Notes under the pieces: model-generated
Told to the model about the DNA's origin: nothing
Databases searched by the model: none
What the model saw: only the letters and a program-made list of their open reading frames with translations
Program-made: the position numbers and the translations under genes
In this document: one piece after another, positions 1 through 55,289 of the stretch
Numbering within the stretch: position 1 is the stretch's first letter
How the letters are laid out: the number at the start of each line of letters is the position of its first letter
Assembly (NCBI GenBank): GCA_977017575.1
Contig: CDRNVI010000203.1
Coordinates: 62,001-126,000, forward strand
Direction of reading: 5' to 3'
Source of the DNA: Paramoeba atlantica
Lineage: Eukaryota > Protista > Discosea
DNA length: 64,000 nt

Positions 1-281
1 CAATGTTTTCATTTCATTCATAACATTTTCACGTTAACTTCGTTCAACTAACTTGAATTTTATTAAAATTATGATTCATAAAATAATTTTTTCATTGCTA
101 AAAATAGAATCGCAATGGAAATTATTATGAAACAAGTTTTAATAATTCAAACTTAAGTTTGAACTCGAGTTATAAAATTTTAATAACATTAATATATACT
201 TTTAAATAACTTCTATAATTAATTCAAAAGAGAATTTATAATTATGAACTTATAAAACTATATTTAATGATTTAAAAATTT

Positions 282-410
282 AATAACTTGTTCTAATGTT
301 TTCAATGTAATACGATATTTACGATATATGATCTTCTTTGTTCCAAAATCAGATGTTGATTATCGTACATTCTTATTACATGAAAACAAAGAACAGCTAC
401 GGATAAGAAC
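282..410 (-). ncRNA. Scaffold hairpin with variable arms, cassette A, minus strand (candidate small-RNA precursor)
   Basis: 298-387 is a reverse-complement copy of the scaffold. On the minus strand the arms GTAGCTGTTCTTT / ATTAGAACAAGTTATT pair with G-U wobbles. Present in all A units (1,4,5,6,7,9,10,11). Confidence 0.55.
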
Positions 411-805
411 TGAAATGCCTTCCATATACCGAGATACTTTAAATTGATTATAGATAAATTTTCTAAAATATTTAATTACAAAAATAATTTAAAATATTAT
501 TTACAAAACTTATAAATATAATCAATAAAAGTATACGTTATAAAGGAGCGCATAGTTCCTATCACTTTTAAATACGCTATTTTCCTTGATAAAAAAAATC
601 ACTGGAAAATTAGCAGTCTTTAAAGAACTTCGATACAAAAAAGTATCTTGACAATCTCTGTTGTTTTTGTTACAAAAAAATAGTAAATAACTTCAAACAT
701 ATATACAAAATTAAACGTGTATAAAAAAAGAAAAACATACACTTTGATACATTCAATCAAAAAAGATCTCAATCATGTATCATTAACTTTAGCATATATG
801 TAAGA

Positions 806-957
806 AGTTCCTTGGTGATTAATTCTTTTACGGTTTTCATGTAATAAACATGTACGATAATCAACATCTGATTTTAACTCAAAGCAGAGTAATCATCGTT
901 AAATATCGTACAAAAGTTATTACAAAGAAAACTGCTAAGAATTATCATCAGGAAATT
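806..957 (+). ncRNA. Scaffold hairpin with variable arms, cassette A, plus strand
   Basis: Scaffold 833-932. The 5' arm AGTTCCTTGGTGATTAATTCTTTTACG pairs with the 3' arm TGCTAAGAATTATCATCAGGAAATT (TTCC/GGAA, TGGTGAT/ATCATCA, AATTCTT/AAGAATT). Confidence 0.65.
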
Positions 958-1244
958 GCACTAAGATTTCCTTCAGAAATTCAAGTACAAATATCCGCTT
1001 AACTTATAAAAAGATATAAGTAGCTTCTATATATATTTTTTTATCGAAAAAACGATAAATAAATAAAGATCATGATAAGATTTCTACGAAATTCAATCAT
1101 GAAGCATACACTATAGTGTATGCAAATTATTACAAAAATAATAATTTTAAAATTTTTTTCTTCGTAATTCAAAGAAGAATTTACTTGAAAAAAAATATAA
1201 ATTTTAATGTTTTCGTGTTTAACTACAACTTAAATTTATATATA

Positions 1245-1698
1245 TTTCGTTAAATTAAGAGAATAATTAAACGAAACTGTTACTCGGCAAAAATAAGGGA
1301 ATTTTTGAGTAACAGACCGTTCAAATTGAAAACAAAAAAACAATTTGCACGGCAATTCTTGGGGTTTTTACGCCTCACGGCTTCGTGATCGGACTAAAGA
1401 GCAGTAGCGAGAGCAAGAAAGTTTGCAGGGGTAGTTGAGTTAGCTATTCCCGGTGGTAGCTAACCTCGATTCCTTAGTCTTTAGTTGTGGTAATTTGGGA
1501 TAGCGAAGTAAAATTTTTAAAGTTCGCTATCGACAATTACTATTCTCTTTCATCTTTTGGCGTGCATTGCTAATTGATCCCAATAGACAATCACATTCAG
1601 AAACGATCGTAGCTTTACCTATATGTATGTAAAATATCATACATAAGAATCAATAAGATCTGTTTCGTCTCCTCTTTTTTCTTTTAAAATAGCAGGAC
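1245..1698 (+). ncRNA. ~450 nt multi-helix structured RNA of unknown class with group I-like core motifs; one per unit
   Basis: Helices include CTGTTACTC/GAGTAACAG, CAAATTG/CAATTTG, TGCACG/CGTGCA, GTTAGCTA/TAGCTAAC, GATAGCGAA/TTCGCTATC, TATGTATG/CATACATA and GAAAC/GTTTC. Three compensatory pair changes occur between unit variants. G-U pairs favour the + strand. Confidence 0.7.
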
Positions 1699-2081
1699 TA
1701 ATCTATATTATATAATTATTATTCAACTTTTTTAATTATATTTTATCTGCTTGAACACCATAGTTCGATAAAAAATAAATAAAAAGATGAATAAATAACT
1801 AAAAAATAAAGATAGACAAGAACAAGAATAGTTTAGTTTAATTCCGTGTTAAATCCTCAATCCTTAAGTCGGATTTGTCACTCCATATACGATCAAACTT
1901 TATTTACTTAAATTTTTACAAAGATAGTAAAATTAAAAGTATAAAGATGATCTAGCTCACCAGTTTTATTTAAATTAAAATCTTACACAATGATTTTATA
2001 TTTATAAACTACTCGCTTCCATCGACCCTCGACTTTGTTGAAGTTTAAGTTTTTGAGTTTACGATATTAAAGAGAAAAAAA

Positions 2082-2227
2082 ATATTATTGCGCTCTATTG
2101 GTGGGGCTTTCGTTAGATTATTAAAAGCTCAACGTCATTGTTCGCGTTTTACGTTACACTCCACAAGCTAAACAAGTGCGTTCTGCCTTAATAATCACTA
2201 CCCCTCACCAAAAGGTCGCAATAATAT
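2082..2227. ncRNA. ~146 nt closed multibranch fold-back element; one per unit
   Basis: An 11 bp terminal stem ATATTATTGCG/CGCAATAATAT encloses GGTG-GGG/CCC-T-CACC, GATTATT/AATAATC and AACGT/ACGTT. Confidence 0.4.
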
Positions 2228-2590
2228 ATGTTTTTAGCGTTTAAGATCTGGAGACCATTTTCAAAATAGAAAATGTCAATCGCTTTTTTCTTACGCAAGT
2301 ACGTCAAAAAAATCGTTTTTCTCCATGAGCTAAAACGAGTTAGTTCGATCGGGTGTTTTTTGATGCTTTTTTTGGATCGCAGCTTCAACAAAAAAAAATT
2401 TCCACTGCTGTTTTCCAACAAAGAAAATTATAAAAAAATAATTTTGTTGTTGTCAAATACGATCTTTTAAAATATAAAATTTTTTTTATCGTTATAAATT
2501 TTATTCCAACATAAATTTGTTGGAAAAGTAACAGTAAAAAGTTGTTAATGAAAAAAAATAAATTCATTAACAACAACGTTGATGAAAAAT

Positions 2591-3065
2591 AACAATCAAC
2601 GCTGTTAAATTTCCAACAAAATAATGTCAGAAAAAAATTTCTGCCGAAATAATTTAGCTGATTAAATTTTTATCACGACAAAAATATTTTTTTGTTGATC
2701 AATTAAATCGTTATTAACAAAAAAGTTATAACGCTGTTAATTTTCCAACATAAAAATTTTTTATCTCTCAAAAAATATTTTTTGATGTTCAAAGTTATCG
2801 TTTGATAACAAAAAAGTTATAACGCTGTAACTTTTCCAACAAAAAAATTTTTTTTCGTGTTAAAAATTATTTTTGATCAATAAAAATTATTTTCGATGTT
2901 CAAATTCATCGTTTGATAACAAAAAAGTTATAACGCTGTTAATTTTCCATCAAAAATTATTTTTTTTGCTTCAAAAATTTTTTTTAACATAAAAATTTAT
3001 GATGATGATTACAAAACCAGTGTTGCAACTCAAAAAAGTTGTTTAACACTGTGAATTTTCCATCA
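2591..3065 (+). repeat. Internal degenerate sub-repeat (AACAAAAAAGTTATAACGCTGTTAATTTTCCA) with ~90-110 bp spacing
   Basis: Core copies at 2716, 2807 and 2918; degenerate copies near 2591 and 3027. Same layout in every unit. Confidence 0.85.
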
Positions 3066-3429
3066 ACATCATAATTTTTATTTAAAAATTTTAATCAAAA
3101 TCAATTTTATAAACATTTTTTGTAAAAAAATTAAAATTTTTACTGGAAAATTACGGTGAGATGCATAAAAATTAGATTTAAACATAAATTTATGCAAACT
3201 ACCGTTTAATTTCCAACAAAATTTAAATTTTTTTCATTCAAAAATAGATTTTTTTAATTTTTCGCTGACAAAATTGAAAAAAAATTGAATTTTCATTCAA
3301 AAAGTTGTAAAATTGAGTCTCAGGATGAAAAAGTGGAAAAAGACCACATTTTATCAATTCGACGCTAAATTAGCAAAAAATTTCAATTTCTACACCTAAA
3401 TGACTGTAGAAATTGGTGTTTTCCTACAA

Positions 3430-4160
3430 TTTTGTGGAAATCCCTGACAAACACTGCTAAATTTCCAACAAAAAGTCAATTTGCAGGTGCTGCCCGTGGA
3501 TTTTCCAACAAAATACTAGCAAAACTACTCAAAATGCTATTTTTCCGGCAGAAAACCGTCAAAATCTGCTTTTTCTGGGCAGGAATGACAAAAACGGCCC
3601 AAAAAAGGCCCTGTCATTTTGCCCAAAAACGCAGTATTTTTTCCTGTTCTGGCCTGCAAATTAGCGGATGTCCAAGTGCCCCAAAAAAAGTGACTTGCAC
3701 TCCGAGCCGACTCGAAAAGTCGTATTTTCCGGCAGAAACGAAAAAATATGCCACATTTTGTCCGACGATTATTTACAACTTTTTCTCGCATCCCATCATA
3801 GCGATTTTGCGGATCTGCAGGTTGGGAGGGAGCCAACTGCATTTTTTGGCCGTTTTGAACCCGTTTTGTAAAAAATCGCATATATAAACTCCTTAATTTC
3901 CCCTCAGAAATCTGCCACTTTTGGAGACCAAAAAGTGTTTTGCAGAATCTAAAGTGGAAAATAGGAGTTTTTTGACCCGATTTTGTGAACAAAACTGGCA
4001 TCAAAAACTATTCCAAATGCTCCAATCCGAATTTCAGCTATTGAACACTAAAAATGCTGAAAATCGCTATTTCGCACTGGAATTCCGCCAAAACTCCTTT
4101 TCAATGCGTATTTTGGGCGAGAAAACCGTCGATTTTATAATTTTTAAACTTTTTTTTGTA
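3430..4160. repeat. GC-richer, inverted-repeat-rich segment of the unit (possibly MITE/fold-back derived)
   Basis: Nested imperfect inverted repeats (GGGCAGGAATGACA/TGTCATTTTGCCC, TGCAG-GTTGG/CCAAC-TGCA, GCGATTTT/AAAATCGC), direct repeats of TTTTCCGGCAGAAA and TTTCCAACAAAA, and frequent short A/T tracts. Confidence 0.5.
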
Positions 4161-4425
4161 TAATTTATCATTTTTAGCGCGGATTTCTATAATTTCTCGC
4201 ATAATTTATTAGTTTTATAGCGTTGTAGTTAAAATTTTCATAATTTTATCATCAAAGTCATCATTTTTCTATAATTTCAAACAAAATTATTAAAAAAAAT
4301 GTTGTCTCAGACGAAAAAATTGCATGAAAGTTGTTAAACAACACTAAAACTAAAAAAATATCCCGCAGAAATTAAAAAACCGTGATAAAAATTTATAAAT
4401 TCAAAAGAAAAATTTAAAAATCTTA

Positions 4426-4486
4426 AAAATTTATGATGAAATCATCTTCTTTGTACCAAAATCAGATGTAAACATCAAAAAATTTT
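4426..4486 (-). ncRNA. Truncated (apical-only) copy of the scaffold hairpin; one per unit
   Basis: ATCATCTTCTTTGTACCAAAATCAGATGT (4441-4469) is identical to the apical part of the cassette B minus scaffold but is closed by a different stem (GATG/CATC plus A/T tracts). Confidence 0.45.
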
Positions 4487-4819
4487 TTTAAAATCACTAG
4501 TTGAAACCATCGTCTATGGTTTCTTTTGTTAATGATCAATGTTTTCATTTCATTCATAACATTTTCACGTTAACTTCGTTCAACTAACTTGAATTTTATT
4601 AAAATTATGATTCATAAAATAATTTTTTCATTGCTAAAAATAGAATCGCAATGGAAATTATTATGAAACAAGTTTTAATAATTCAAACTTAAGTTTGAAC
4701 TCGAGTTATAAAATTTTATAAATTTAAATTATAATTTCAATCATTTCTATAATTAATTCAATAGAGAATTTATAATTATGAAACTATGAAACTATATTTA
4801 ATGATTTAAAATTTAATAA

Positions 4820-4951
4820 TCCCTGTATGTGTTCTTTATGTTTTCAATGTCTGATGATATGTTCGATATATCATCTTCTTTGTACCAAAATCAGATGTTG
4901 ATTATCGTACATTCTTATTACATGAAAACAAAAAAGAACATACAACAGGGA
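4820..4951 (-). ncRNA. Scaffold hairpin with variable arms, cassette B, minus strand
   Basis: Scaffold 4840-4929. Minus-strand arms TCCCTGTTGTATGTTCTTTTTT / ATAAAGAACACATACAGGGA pair. Second copy in unit 3 (+4656). Confidence 0.65.
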
Positions 4952-5074
4952 AATACTAAGATACTTTAATAACTATTATGTATATAAATTGATCGAATAT
5001 ATAATTACAAAAATAATTTAAAATATTCAATAATATTAAATATATATAGTTATTAAAGTGATCTTGTATCCTAG

Positions 5075-5217
5075 TTCATGTCGATTCTTTTAGGTTTTCA
5101 TGTAATAAGAATGTACGATAATCAACATCTGATTTTGACTCAAAGTAGAGTAATCATCGTTAAATATCAGTACAAAACTTATTACAAAGAAAACAACTAA
5201 TAAAGCATCGACATGAA
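5075..5217 (+). ncRNA. Scaffold hairpin with variable arms, cassette B, plus copy 1
   Basis: Scaffold 5094-5194. Arms TTCATGTCGATTCTTTTAG / AACTAATAAAGCATCGACATGAA include a perfect 11 bp TTCATGTCGAT/ATCGACATGAA. Confidence 0.7.
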
Positions 5218-5437
5218 ATTCTGCTAAGATTTCTACGAAATTCAAGCAGAAAATTACACTAAGATTTCCTATAGAAATTCAAGTGTAAACAAACATTAGT
5301 ATTGCAAAAACAATCTATGTTTGTATTAAAAAAAACACATCTAGAACAATATAATATAAATCAATAAAAATATTTAATTACAAAAATAATATAAAATATA
5401 ATTTATAAATTTATTATTAAAATGATCTAGATGAACA

Positions 5438-5580
5438 TATTCCTGGGTATTCTAATGTGGTTTTCATGTAATAAACATGTACGATAATCAACATCTGATT
5501 TTGACTCAAAGTAGAGTAATCATCGTTAAATATCGTATAAAGTTTATTAATAATAAAACCACAAAGGAATCCAAGGAATA
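5438..5580 (+). ncRNA. Scaffold hairpin with variable arms, cassette B, plus copy 2
   Basis: Scaffold 5460-5559. Arms TATTCCTGGGTATTCTAATGTG (22 nt) / CACAAAGGAATCCAAGGAATA (21 nt) pair with mismatches and a U-G wobble. Confidence 0.7.
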
Positions 5581-8500
5581 ATTATGCTAAGATTTATACT
5601 AAATTCAAGCATAAGATTGCACTAAGATTTCCTTCAGAAATTCAAGTGCAAATATCCGCTCAACTTATAAAATATAAGTGGCGTCTATATATTTAATCAT
5701 TACAAAAATAATGAATTAAATAGATCATGATAAGATTTTTTACAAAAATTCAATCATGAAGCATACACTATAGTGTATGCAAATTATTACAAAAATAATA
5801 ATTTTAAAATTTTTTCTTCGAAATTCAAAGAAGAATTTATTCGAAAAAAATATAAATTTTAATGTTTACGTGTTTAACTACAACTTAAATTTATATATAT
5901 TTCGTTAAATTAAGAGAATAATTAAACGAAACTGTTACTCGGCAAAAATAAGGGAATTTTTGAGTAACAGACCGTTCAAATTGAAAACAAAAAAACAATT
6001 TGCACGGCAATTCTTGGGGTTTTTACGCCTCACGGCTTCGTGATTGGACTAAAGAGCAGGAGCGAGAGCAAGAAAGTTTGCAGGGGTAGTTGAGTTAGCT
6101 ATTCCCGGTGGTAGCTAACCTCGATTCCTTAGTCTTTAGTTGTGATAATTTGGGATAGCGAAGTAAAATTTTTAAAGTTCGCTATCGACAATTATTGTTC
6201 TCTTTCATCTTTTGGCGTGCATTGCTAATTGATCCCAATAGACAATCACATTCAGAAATGATCGTTGCTATCCCTATATGTATGTAAAATATCATACATA
6301 AGAATCAATAAGATCTATTTCGTCTCCTCTTTTTTCTTTTAAAATAGCAGGACTAATCTATATTATATAGTTATTATTCAACTTTTTTAATTATATTTTA
6401 TCTGCTTGAACACCATAGTTCGATAAAAAATAAATAAAAAGATGAATAAATAACTAAAAAATAAAGATAGACAAGAACAAGAATAGTTTAGTTTAATTCC
6501 GTGTTAAATCCTCAATCCTTAAGTCGGATTTGTCACTCCATATACGATCAAACTTTATTTACTTAAATTTTTACAAAGATAGTAAAATTAAAAGTATAAA
6601 GATGATCTAGCTCACCAGTTTTATTTAAATTAAAATCTTACACAATGATTTTATATTTATAAACTACTCGCTTCCATCGACCCTCGACTTTGTTGAAGTT
6701 TGAGTTTTTGAGTTTACGATATTAAAGAGAAAAAAAATATTATTGCGCTCTATTGGTGGGGCTTTCGTTAGATTATTAAAAGCTCAACGTCATTGTTCGC
6801 GTTTTACGTTACACTCCACAAGCTAAACAAGTGCGTTCTGCCTTAATAATCACTACCCCTCACCAAAAGGTCGCAATAATATATGTTTTTAGCGTTTAAG
6901 ATCTGGAGACCATTTTCAAAATAGAAAATGTCAATCGCTTTTTTCTTACGCAAGTACGTCAAAAAAATCGTTTTTCTCCATGAGCTAAAACGAGTTAGTT
7001 CGATCGGGCTTTTTTTGATGCTTTTTTTGGATCGCAGCTTCAACAAAAAAAAATTTCTGCTGCTGTTTTCCAACAAAGAAAATTATAAAAAAATAATTTT
7101 GTTGTTGTCAAATACGATCTTTTAAAATATAAAATTTTTTTTATCGTTATAAATTTTATTCCAACATAAATTTGTTGGAAAAGTAACAGTAAAAAGTTGT
7201 TAATGAAAAAAAATAAATTCATTAACAACAACGTTGATGAAAAATATCAATCAACGCTGTTAAATTTCCAACAAAATAATGTCAGAAAAAAATTTCTGCC
7301 GAAATAATTTAGCTGATTAAATTTTTATCACGACAAAAATATTTTTTTGTGGATCAATTAAATCGTTATTAACAAAAAAGTTATAACGCTGTTAATTTTC
7401 CAACCTAAAAATTTTTTATCTCTCAAAAAATATTTTTTGATGTTCAAAGTTATCGTTTGATAACAAAAAAGTTATAACGCTGTAACTTTTCCAACAAAAA
7501 AAATTTTTTTTCGTGTTAAAAATTATTTTTGATCAATAAAAATTATTTTCGATGTTCAAATTCATCGTTTGATAACAAAAAAGTTATAACGCTGTTAATT
7601 TTCCATCAAAAATTATTTTTTTTGCTTCAAAAATTTTTTTTAACATAAAAATTTATGATGATGATTACAAAACCAGTGTTGCAACTCAAAAAAGTTGTTT
7701 AACACTGTGAATTTTCCATCAACATCATAATTTTTATTTAAAAATTTTAATCAAAATCAATTTTATAAACATTTTTTGTAAAAAAATTAAAATTTTTACT
7801 GGAAAATTACGGTGAGATGCATAAAAATTAGATTTAAACATAAATTTATGCAAACTACCGTTTAATTTCCAACAAAATTTAAATTTTTTTCATTCAAAAA
7901 TAGATTTTTTTAATTTTTCGCTGACAAAATTGAAAAAAAATTGAATTTTCATTCAAAAAGTTGTAAAATTGAGTCTCAGGATGAAAAAGTGGAAAAAGAC
8001 CACATTTTATCAATTCGACGCTAAATTAGCAAAAAATTTCAATTTCTACACCTAAATGACTGTAGAAATTGGTGTTTTCCTACAATTTTGTGGAAATCCC
8101 TGACAAACACTGCTAAATTTCCAACAAAAAGTCAATTTGCAGGTGCTGCCCGTGGATTTTCCAACAAAATACTAGCAAAACTACTCAAAATGCTATTTTT
8201 CCGGCAGAAAACCGTCAAAATCTGCTTTTTCTGGGCAGGAATGACAAAAACGGCCCAAAAAAGGCCCTGTCATTTTGCCCAAAAACGCAGTATTTTTTCC
8301 TGTTCTGGCCTGCAAATTAGCGGATGTCCAAGTGCCCCAAAAAAAGTGACTTGCACTCCGAGCCGACTCGAAAAGTCGTATTTTCCGGCAGAAACGAAAA
8401 AATATGCCACATTTTGTCCGACGATTATTTACAACTTTTTCTCGCATCCCATCATAGCGATTTTGCGGATCTGCAGGTTGGGAGGGAGCCAACTGCATTT

Positions 8501-54186: not shown

Positions 54187-54775
54187 TGAGAGGGGAGCAG
54201 AATCAATAGAGAAAACAAGAGAAAAGAAAGAGAAACAGAAACTCTGGATCAAAACCTTTATGGAAAAGATCCCCAGCCAACACAAACAGAACAAGAAAAC
54301 AACAACAAAAAAACAGAAAAGCAAGAAGAAGAACAACAAAAGGAATCACAACTGAGAAGAGCACAGAATCGCTGAAACTCAACTCAAATCGGAATCCCAA
54401 GTCTACACAGCAACTAAAGAAGGAAGAAAACAACAAAAGATGATAACAACAAAAGAAGAGAACAGAAAGCAAGCAAGGCAAGCCAAAAGATCACAAAGGA
54501 AAGCAAAGAGAGAGAGAGAAAGCAACAAGAAAGCAGAAAGAAAGCAAAAGGTGGCAAAGTGGCAAGAAAAAAGGGCAAAAACGTGAATGTGAAAACTGAA
54601 TAAAAGGAGTGCTAAAAATCTCATGATTTTGGCTAAAATTACGATAAAATGGCACGCAGCTGTCTGTGAGGCTCAGGGCTCTCCGAAAGGACCAAAACTC
54701 ATGATAAAAGGTATCAAGGAAGCTTAGGGAAGGCTCAGGGAAGCTCAAGGAACTGAAAAGGCACTGAAAGGCACA
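54187..54775. mobile_element. Possible LTR-like fragment at the array boundary
   Basis: Purine-rich segment starting TG(AGAGGGG) 6 bp after the last exact array match and possibly ending ...GGCACA. Composition resembles the 58711 repeat. No target-site duplication and no second copy in the window; the right end is a guess. Confidence 0.25.
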
Positions 54776-55289
54776 ACTTCTGTGTTGGAAGCAGGTTTCA
54801 CCTCAATAAATTGTCATTTTGTTGAAATTGGATTTGGAGTAAAGGATTGAAATTTTGTTAGAATTGTTGGAGTGATTGAATAGAAAGTATTTAATAGAAA
54901 GTTTAGTTTTATAGAACTGATTAAAAATCGTAATTTGGTTGGGTTTGAAAAGATTAAGAAAGTGGAAGTTGAATTATTGTTTGTGGAGTTGAAAATATTT
55001 TATAAAAAGTTAGTTTTTGTTGAGAAAAAAATAGATTAAATTAAATTTGAATGACTTAAAGTATTGGTGGTAGTTGATTTTAAATAAAAAGATAGGAATT
55101 TGTTACTTCTTCTTCAAATGGAACAAAGGTGGAATTTGATTGAAAAAACTAAAGTAGTAATTGTTGAATTATAGATTTGTTTTGATCTATTGAATAGGAG
55201 GAAGTAGAATTAGAGTAGAATTGTTGAACATAGTCAAATGTTGGTTTTGAAATCATTGGTTCAAAAGTTAGTGAATTAGTGTTTAATTG

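Follow-up and report, generated by a model that had tools for sequence, protein, structure and literature searches.

Compensated base pairs and invariant loops in a conserved block of a very abundant satellite-type repeat in the Paramoeba atlantica assembly

The question raised by this locus is whether a short block of a gene-free, highly amplified tandem repeat is kept as a folded molecule and, if so, whether that molecule is RNA or DNA. The block lies in the window, a stretch of 64,000 nucleotides (contig C203, positions 62001-126000) of an assembly of 45.7 Mb in 248 contigs. An earlier note, made from the letters of the window, took positions 1245-1698 for a structured RNA of about 450 nt, on the grounds of three double substitutions that preserve base pairing between near-identical units. 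As described below, the pairing is real and selected, and the boundaries, the strand and the nature of the molecule require a more qualified answer.

Most of the window is occupied by the array in which the block recurs.

Positions 1-54186, + strand: tandem array of 12 head-to-tail units of 4,538-4,656 bp

These 12 units are part of ~25 on the same contig, where three main unit types are interspersed, and the G+C content of the array (~25%) lies far below that of the other partitions of the assembly (34-50%). The 454-base stretch 1245-1698 occurs 40 times in the assembly, always within arrays (contigs C203, C233 and C245-C248), and contig C162 has two more copies, 86-87% identical, within another tandem repeat (14,868 bp). 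Searches by BLAST, with a covariance model and with the upstream block return the same 40 array copies and no dispersed ones, and a covariance model of the hairpins at 1484-1600 finds nothing in the whole genome beyond these 40. No convincing reading frame was found in the unit or in the tail that follows the array under genetic codes 1, 4, 6 and 10, and a tRNA scan found no tRNA. In the public run X1, 640,456 of 3.48 million contig records (~18%) fall on one unit (1-5843); the records of this run on 1-5843 also contain thousands of low-support internal 'joints' with sides of 21-26 letters. On the minus strand, the segment 3400-4120 is a relatively G+C-richer part of the unit (33-36%), in which A- and T-tracts recur by eye every ~10-11 bases, resembling intrinsically bent DNA.

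The only diverged relative of the block, the copy on contig C162 (hereafter the paralogue), defines which part of the unit is conserved.

Positions 1066-1666, + strand: conserved module, the sole long stretch common to the unit and the 14,868-bp repeat
Positions 1066-1204, + strand: upstream conserved block with small perfect hairpins, ~2% of sites differing from the paralogue
Positions 1205-1232, + strand: hypervariable patch between two conserved blocks, in which ~12 of 28 bases (~40%) differ in the paralogue
Positions 1233-1393, + strand: invariant 5′ domain, the same in all 40 copies and different at one base in the paralogue
Positions 1670-1685, + strand: pyrimidine- and T-rich tract that follows the last helix and is changed in units 7 and 12; homology to the paralogue stops just before it

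Overall identity between the module and the paralogue is 87%, and the divergence is very patchy: the segment 1394-1483 is ~30% different and the segment 1484-1600 is 14% different. Since the block common to the two repeats runs from 1066 to 1660, the extent 1245-1698 and the idea of one discrete RNA of ~450 nt are not borne out. Nor are the differences between units few in this region, as had been assumed, because 20 variable sites fall in 1390-1715 and only 3 in ~840 flanking bases. The T-rich tract that had been placed at 1675-1685 is present in the commonest unit type and altered in units 7 and 12. The 5′ domain contains hairpins at 1277-1315, 1317-1352 and 1375-1388, but these do not vary at all, so that they hold no covariation information and are silent on structure. 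Just downstream of the hypervariable patch, a run of TATATATA occupies 1236-1244. The 14,868-bp repeat itself, with a G+C content of 10-41%, is a mosaic of modules that are common to the 4.5-kb unit and stand in another order. It contains a copy of the segment 1822-2039 with 99% identity, placed 3.8 kb upstream of the sequence that matches 1066-1660 at 87%, and each of its units has a 130-bp piece (1818-1950) three times.

The helical elements of the 3′ part of the module are as follows.

Positions 1439-1464, + strand: hairpin GTTAGCTA/TAGCTAAC with conserved loop TTCCCGGTGG at 1447-1456, 5 of 8 pairs broken in the paralogue
Positions 1488-1542, + strand: two-part hairpin of 8 and 9 bp with a 3x3 internal loop and a 15-nt apical loop at 1508-1522
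Positions 1562-1594, + strand: 13-bp hairpin that keeps three bulges (1565, 1573 and 1587)
Positions 1600-1666, + strand: closing 9-bp helix (1600-1608/1657-1666) around a hairpin at 1619-1647

Each of the three double substitutions that prompted the earlier note is recovered in a MAFFT alignment of the 12 units: C-G becomes T-A at 1504/1526 in units 7 and 12 (across units 1-12, the C/T column at 1504 reads CCCCCCTCCCCT and the G/A column at 1526 reads GGGGGGAGGGGA), G-C becomes A-T at 1490/1540 in units 2 and 3, and C-G becomes T-A at 1604/1662 in units 2, 3, 7 and 12. The corresponding positions in other units (28967/28989, 51797/51819, 6145/6195 and 6259/6317) agree with the unit offsets, and all three changes fall in real helices, namely 1488-1495/1535-1542 together with 1499-1507/1523-1531, and 1600-1608/1657-1666. 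Within 1484-1600 the paralogue contributes four further compensated pairs, one in hairpin 1488-1542 (1491/1539, T-A to C-G) and three in hairpin 1562-1594 (1563/1593, T-A to C-G; 1564/1592, G-C to A-T; 1568/1589, T-A to C-G), as well as one change from G-C to G.T (1505.1525). Hairpin 1488-1542 thus has compensatory pairs at 1490/1540, 1491/1539 and 1504/1526, and G.U pairs at 1489.1541 (fixed), 1488.1542 (in units 2 and 3) and 1505.1525 (in the paralogue).

Extending the alignment to the paralogue, as had been proposed, leaves every internal stem pair in 1484-1600 unbroken, but the hairpin at 1439-1464, whose closing pair is already opened in units 7 and 12, is lost. The fold of the surrounding domain (1394-1483) is lost with it in the paralogue copy (-16.6 vs -32 kcal/mol). 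The closing helix persists there with its register shifted (G1604 pairs with C1661), and a 10-nt deletion has shortened its inner hairpin. A long-range helix, 1257-1265/1543-1551, appears in the minimum-energy fold; it was rejected, being without covariation and in competition with the base of hairpin 1488-1542.

In a curated structure of nine helices and 78 pairs, compared among the 12 units and the paralogue, seven pairs, located in four helix segments, are changed on both sides and still pair. All of these comparisons come from one genome and cover about four distinct sequence types only. Shuffles give 2.3 +/- 1.2 such pairs, and none of 500 reaches seven; when the structure is slid by 1-3 columns, 0-1 double-changed pairs remain. 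Counted by lineage, at least eight compensations were not reached in any of 200,000 random placements of the observed numbers of substitutions (P<5e-6), and at least three lineages (unit types B and C and the paralogue) acquired compensations independently.

The kind of change is as informative as its number. All seven compensations are transition-transition, whereas at unpaired sites of this stretch 12 transversions are counted against 5 transitions (P=0.0002 for seven of seven; by Fisher test, P=0.0009 by site and P=0.025 with each pair counted once). Transversions in stems are depleted, with three observed and 8.9 expected (P=0.02). Compensation by transitions only is the pattern expected if the change must go through a tolerated G.U (or G.T) intermediate. 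Consistent with a constraint on the fold, in hairpins 1488-1542 and 1562-1594 variable sites number 0 of 28 in loops and bulges, 14 of 60 in stems and 5 of 29 in linkers (P=0.004, 0.05). In hairpin 1562-1594 the compensated pairs flank a retained bulge, an arrangement that is not explicable by one copying event; on the + strand, an intermediate in which the 3′ arm changes first has an energy of -8.0 kcal/mol, compared with -7.7 for the parent and -2.5 for the intermediate in which the 5′ arm changes first.

The transition-only spectrum, the invariant loops and the bulge between compensated pairs point to selection on the fold of the three helices 1488-1542, 1562-1594 and 1600-1608/1657-1666, and we take it as shown that these helices are kept by selection. 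The same three observations speak against the re-matching of arms by template switching as the whole story, and argue that the block is a folded single strand under selection rather than a set of passively copied palindromes. The inference of a selected secondary structure in the earlier note therefore stands, now on seven compensatory pairs in three helices, and helices with covariation support, the mark of a structured non-coding RNA in general, are present in the block.

Which strand folds is less clear. The robust helices contain four G.U and no A.C pairs when read on the + strand (4:0, P=0.06). The preference of wobble pairs for this strand, which had been claimed for the structure in general, holds for hairpin 1488-1542, in which the + strand is better by 4-5 kcal/mol; for the other two elements the minus strand has a slight advantage. 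Compared with shuffles, the folding of either strand is much more favourable (z-scores of -5.3 on the + and -4.5 on the minus strand), and the strand evidence for + is weak. A unit-wide count of G.T versus A.C mismatches was discarded as a strand test, since it is swamped by chance AT-rich stems and is uninformative.

Public sequence collections are silent on a transcript. None of the public runs recorded as RNA contains the stretch, and one presumed RNA run, whose species label is shared with three DNA runs, has next to none of its words. Four public contig runs cover the whole unit evenly, as DNA would. Nearly identical sequence is found in four studies under four organism labels, and its near-identity adds no evolutionary depth. 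Two conserved 20-22-mers, looked for as exact words in collections of metagenomes and prokaryote genomes, gave no hits, and hence no homologues from other species in those collections.

The block fits no known RNA family. Searches of the window and contig C162 against Rfam gave no match at gathering score, and at E<=10, including a search with the 681-base block alone, only noise (12-26 bits, with cut-offs of 38-150) was obtained, so that none of the families suggested earlier (group I intron, RNase P, RNase MRP, SRP, U3 and telomerase RNA) is matched, and neither are self-cleaving ribozymes or snoRNAs. Stable tetraloop motifs are absent from the block, and the kinetoplastid spliced-leader word is absent from the window. 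Inspection by eye for H/ACA and C/D boxes gave an ACA after hairpin 1562-1594 that runs into the stem and is missing from the paralogue, and this identity was rejected.

A possible model takes the block 1066-1666 for the functional core of the 4.5-kb satellite-type repeat, which is very abundant; the 3′ half of the block (~1484-1666) would work as a folded single strand. Changes in the stems would step through transitions that can pass via G.U wobble pairs, and the three helices would present invariant loops, presumably as putative protein-binding sites, while the invariant 160-base domain at 1233-1393 may carry a sequence-specific function. If the folded molecule is RNA, it might start near 1233-1275 and end near the T-rich tract at ~1670-1685. 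We tentatively prefer to regard the + strand as a candidate non-coding transcript, or as a domain of a longer transcript of the repeat, although this assignment is possible rather than probable. Its possible cellular roles include a repeat- or heterochromatin-associated RNA, a processing signal and a primer-like transcript. The nested architecture, in which the helices are imperfect, bulges are conserved and a closing helix surrounds an inner hairpin, counts for RNA. Against a transcript count the negative results from RNA runs and Rfam, the thin strand evidence and the failure of 1394-1483 to be kept in the paralogue. Palindromes with co-varying stems occur throughout the unit, including its hypervariable part, so that the maintenance of hairpins may be a property of the DNA, which also argues against RNA. 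We give little credence to the speculation that the repeat came to occupy a large share of the DNA in the amoeba-kinetoplastid consortium because the block encodes a new structured RNA that is highly expressed, or because it acts as a single-strand element of the origin type.

The close rival of a transcript, itself somewhat unlikely, is that the hairpins act at the level of DNA, single-stranded or as cruciforms, and are recognized by proteins in the manner of replication-origin or centromere-type dyads, with no need of a stable RNA. The covariation, the transition bias and the loop conservation apply equally to such elements, G.T also being the least harmful mismatch in DNA. A DNA-level element would account for the missing RNA signal and for the extreme abundance of the repeat in run X1, and the favourable folding of both strands, the co-varying palindromes all through the unit and the sharing of the block by two different repeat families are in keeping with it. 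However, in a cruciform the fixed G.T pairs 1489.1541 and 1286.1306 would turn into G.T/A.C mismatches, and DNA dyads do not usually have retained bulges, a 3x3 internal loop or a long-range closing helix. The block also has no known origin motif, the universal minicircle sequence is absent from the array, and origin or centromere activity is hypothetical.

We consider it improbable that the fold is a functionless by-product, in which decaying satellite palindromes have their arms re-matched by template switching or intra-strand repair. The unit has no genes and abounds in palindromes, of which many show matched changes in its hypervariable part, stems change at least as fast as linkers, the module is confined to arrays, and transcript evidence is absent from the public runs, all as such a process would have it. 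Nevertheless, template switching copies any mutation type, and the spacers of neutral palindromes should drift fastest. The seven compensations are instead all transition pairs on a transversion-rich background in which stem transversions are depleted, the loops and bulges are invariant, and bulges between compensated pairs are retained. Moreover, the 160-base 5′ domain is near-identical, to one base, across repeat families that are 14-30% different next door. Neutral palindromes maintained by template switching are disfavoured on these grounds.

The location of the repeat bears on a further reading, namely that the array is bulk kinetoplast DNA of a Perkinsela-like kinetoplastid, with the block as its conserved region (origin or promoter), as the missing mitochondrial rRNA or as a guide-RNA scaffold. 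A kinetoplastid is present in the assembly in the form of contigs of 46-50% G+C with very long reading frames, and a spliced-leader-like word, ATACAGTTTCTGTACTT, which we take to be one base off the prokinetoplastid spliced-leader word, occurs at 11 dispersed loci on contigs of this composition (C3, C10, C14, C23, C42, C51, C58, C60 and C99). The 25% G+C of the array and its abundance fit kinetoplast DNA, as does the presence of the block in two repeat classes, which would be expected of a minicircle conserved region. The kinetoplast DNA of Perkinsela is AT-rich, amounts to ~120-250 Mb and is largely undescribed, and its rRNAs have never been found (PMC4669381, PMC6334171, PMC7859406).

The junction at the right end of the array speaks against this location.

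Positions 54187-54806, + strand: dispersed repeat beginning with TG, the first ~617 bp of the non-array tail, at a precise array/repeat junction

The array is interrupted at unit position ~3890 by this dispersed repeat of ~617 bp, at least 28 copies of which lie on other contigs, all starting at the same first base as 54,187. Those contigs have 34-44% G+C, reach 450 kb and carry ordinary Q-rich eukaryotic genes, such as one for a DnaJ-RRM protein, and the rest of the 10-kb tail (to 64000) is a mosaic of dispersed, LTR-like repeats known from contigs C140-C234. From 54187 onward the tail is also present on contig C207, at 99.99% identity but with a different left flank. Because a random chimeric join would not hit the terminus of a repeat, a nuclear chromosomal satellite is favoured over kinetoplast DNA, and this satellite probably belongs to the AT-richer genome in the assembly, i.e. 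that of the amoeba host. This reading of the junction calls for caution, in that the assembly does contain chimeric contigs and the abundance and AT content fit kinetoplast DNA. At C233:26000-35638 the array breaks at unit position ~1640 and runs straight into alphaproteobacterial rimP, nusA, infB and truB genes of 55% G+C, a junction that is most likely an assembly chimera.

The motifs that a kinetoplast element should carry are also missing. At up to two mismatches the array contains no universal minicircle sequence (GGGGTTGGTGTA, CSB-3), which led us to reject a minicircle conserved region; short CSB-like words, recognized by eye, stand in reverse order, and one is altered in the paralogue. 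A mitochondrial rRNA (9S/12S) was rejected likewise, since the window contains no 530-loop or peptidyl-transferase motif (ACCTCGNTGT at up to one mismatch, GCCAGCNNNNGCGGT at up to two), and since the domain 1394-1483, ~30% different and unfolded in the paralogue, shows that the molecule is not conserved whole, unlike an rRNA. The kinetoplast reading is therefore quite improbable.

Mitochondrial sequences of another kind were encountered in the assembly. At least 12 contigs of 20-42 kb (within C108-C135) carry an ordinary, unedited mitochondrial gene set in which cox3 lies directly upstream of cox1, cob is ~21 kb away and TGA encodes Trp. As the mitochondrial genes of Perkinsela are edited and differently arranged, these contigs are probably host mitochondrial DNA. 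A cox1 of the kinetoplastid type was not found in the assembly. At C215:29000-38999, a reading frame begins as the N-terminus of a bacterial-type cytochrome oxidase subunit I and abruptly becomes NHL repeats; it adjoins B-box zinc-finger genes and is either a chimeric contig or a remnant of a transfer.

A relic of a mobile-element RNA (SINE-like, or a retrotransposon leader or 3′ stem-loop) that was once selected for retrotransposition and later amplified as a satellite is highly unlikely. The block does recall a SINE in passing from an invariant head through a variable body to conserved 3′ stem-loops and a T-rich end, the two repeat families combine the same modules in different orders, and LTR-like repeats adjoin the array. 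However, sequence, covariance-model and upstream-block searches place all 40 copies inside tandem arrays, a primer-binding site or tRNA 3′ end match for TGGTAGCTAACCTCGATTCC is at chance level (two non-array hits and five control hits), the head is not tRNA-, 7SL- or 5S-like, and compensation is still ongoing among the current array variants.

Satellite repeats are usually regarded as filler without structure, and here a block within a satellite bears the statistical marks of a functional RNA, namely compensated pairs, transitions along the wobble path and frozen loops. If the block is transcribed, it would represent a new RNA family of a little-known protist, with gene copies that number in the thousands. 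If the block acts as DNA, it would be a candidate origin- or centromere-type element and a possible explanation of the runaway abundance of the repeat. The junction at 54187 bears on where this hyper-abundant DNA is located, and points to a chromosome rather than to the kinetoplast of the Perkinsela-like symbiont. The 120-250 Mb of mitochondrial DNA in that symbiont are an open puzzle (PMC6334171). Should the repeat lie in this giant kinetoplast after all, the block would be the first element with a function to be recognized in its unexplained bulk DNA.

Several known systems resemble parts of this picture. Kinetoplast minicircles, with their conserved region, and the tandem-repeat guide-RNA molecules of bodonids share with the present repeat a conserved block in different high-copy AT-rich repeats and variable cassettes elsewhere in the unit; they differ in that GGGGTTGGTGTA is absent here, the CSB-like words are misordered and the array adjoins a dispersed repeat of nuclear type. 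Satellite DNAs that encode structured RNAs are represented by the hammerhead-ribozyme satellites of newts, schistosomes and cave crickets, which are likewise tandem, very abundant and protein-free and contain a compact conserved folded domain. In contrast to these satellites, the present unit measures 4.5 kb rather than a few hundred bases, matches no ribozyme model and is transcribed only putatively. Dyad-symmetric (non-B-form) centromeric satellites are similarly abundant and dense in inverted repeats, with their symmetry maintained, whereas the helices of the block are not perfect, carry bulges and fixed G.T pairs and have loops that never vary; a centromeric identity is only hypothetical. 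The vertebrate mitochondrial OriL and the ori/rep elements of yeast mitochondria are stem-loop origins that act in single-stranded DNA, and the yeast elements are amplified in tandem in hypersuppressive petites. Although the present block has no sequence similarity to them, comprises several hairpins and a 160-base invariant domain and is probably located on a chromosome, it is like these origins in being a G+C-richer hairpin block in AT-rich, hyper-amplified DNA, with compensatory evolution of its stems and a strand-specific fold.
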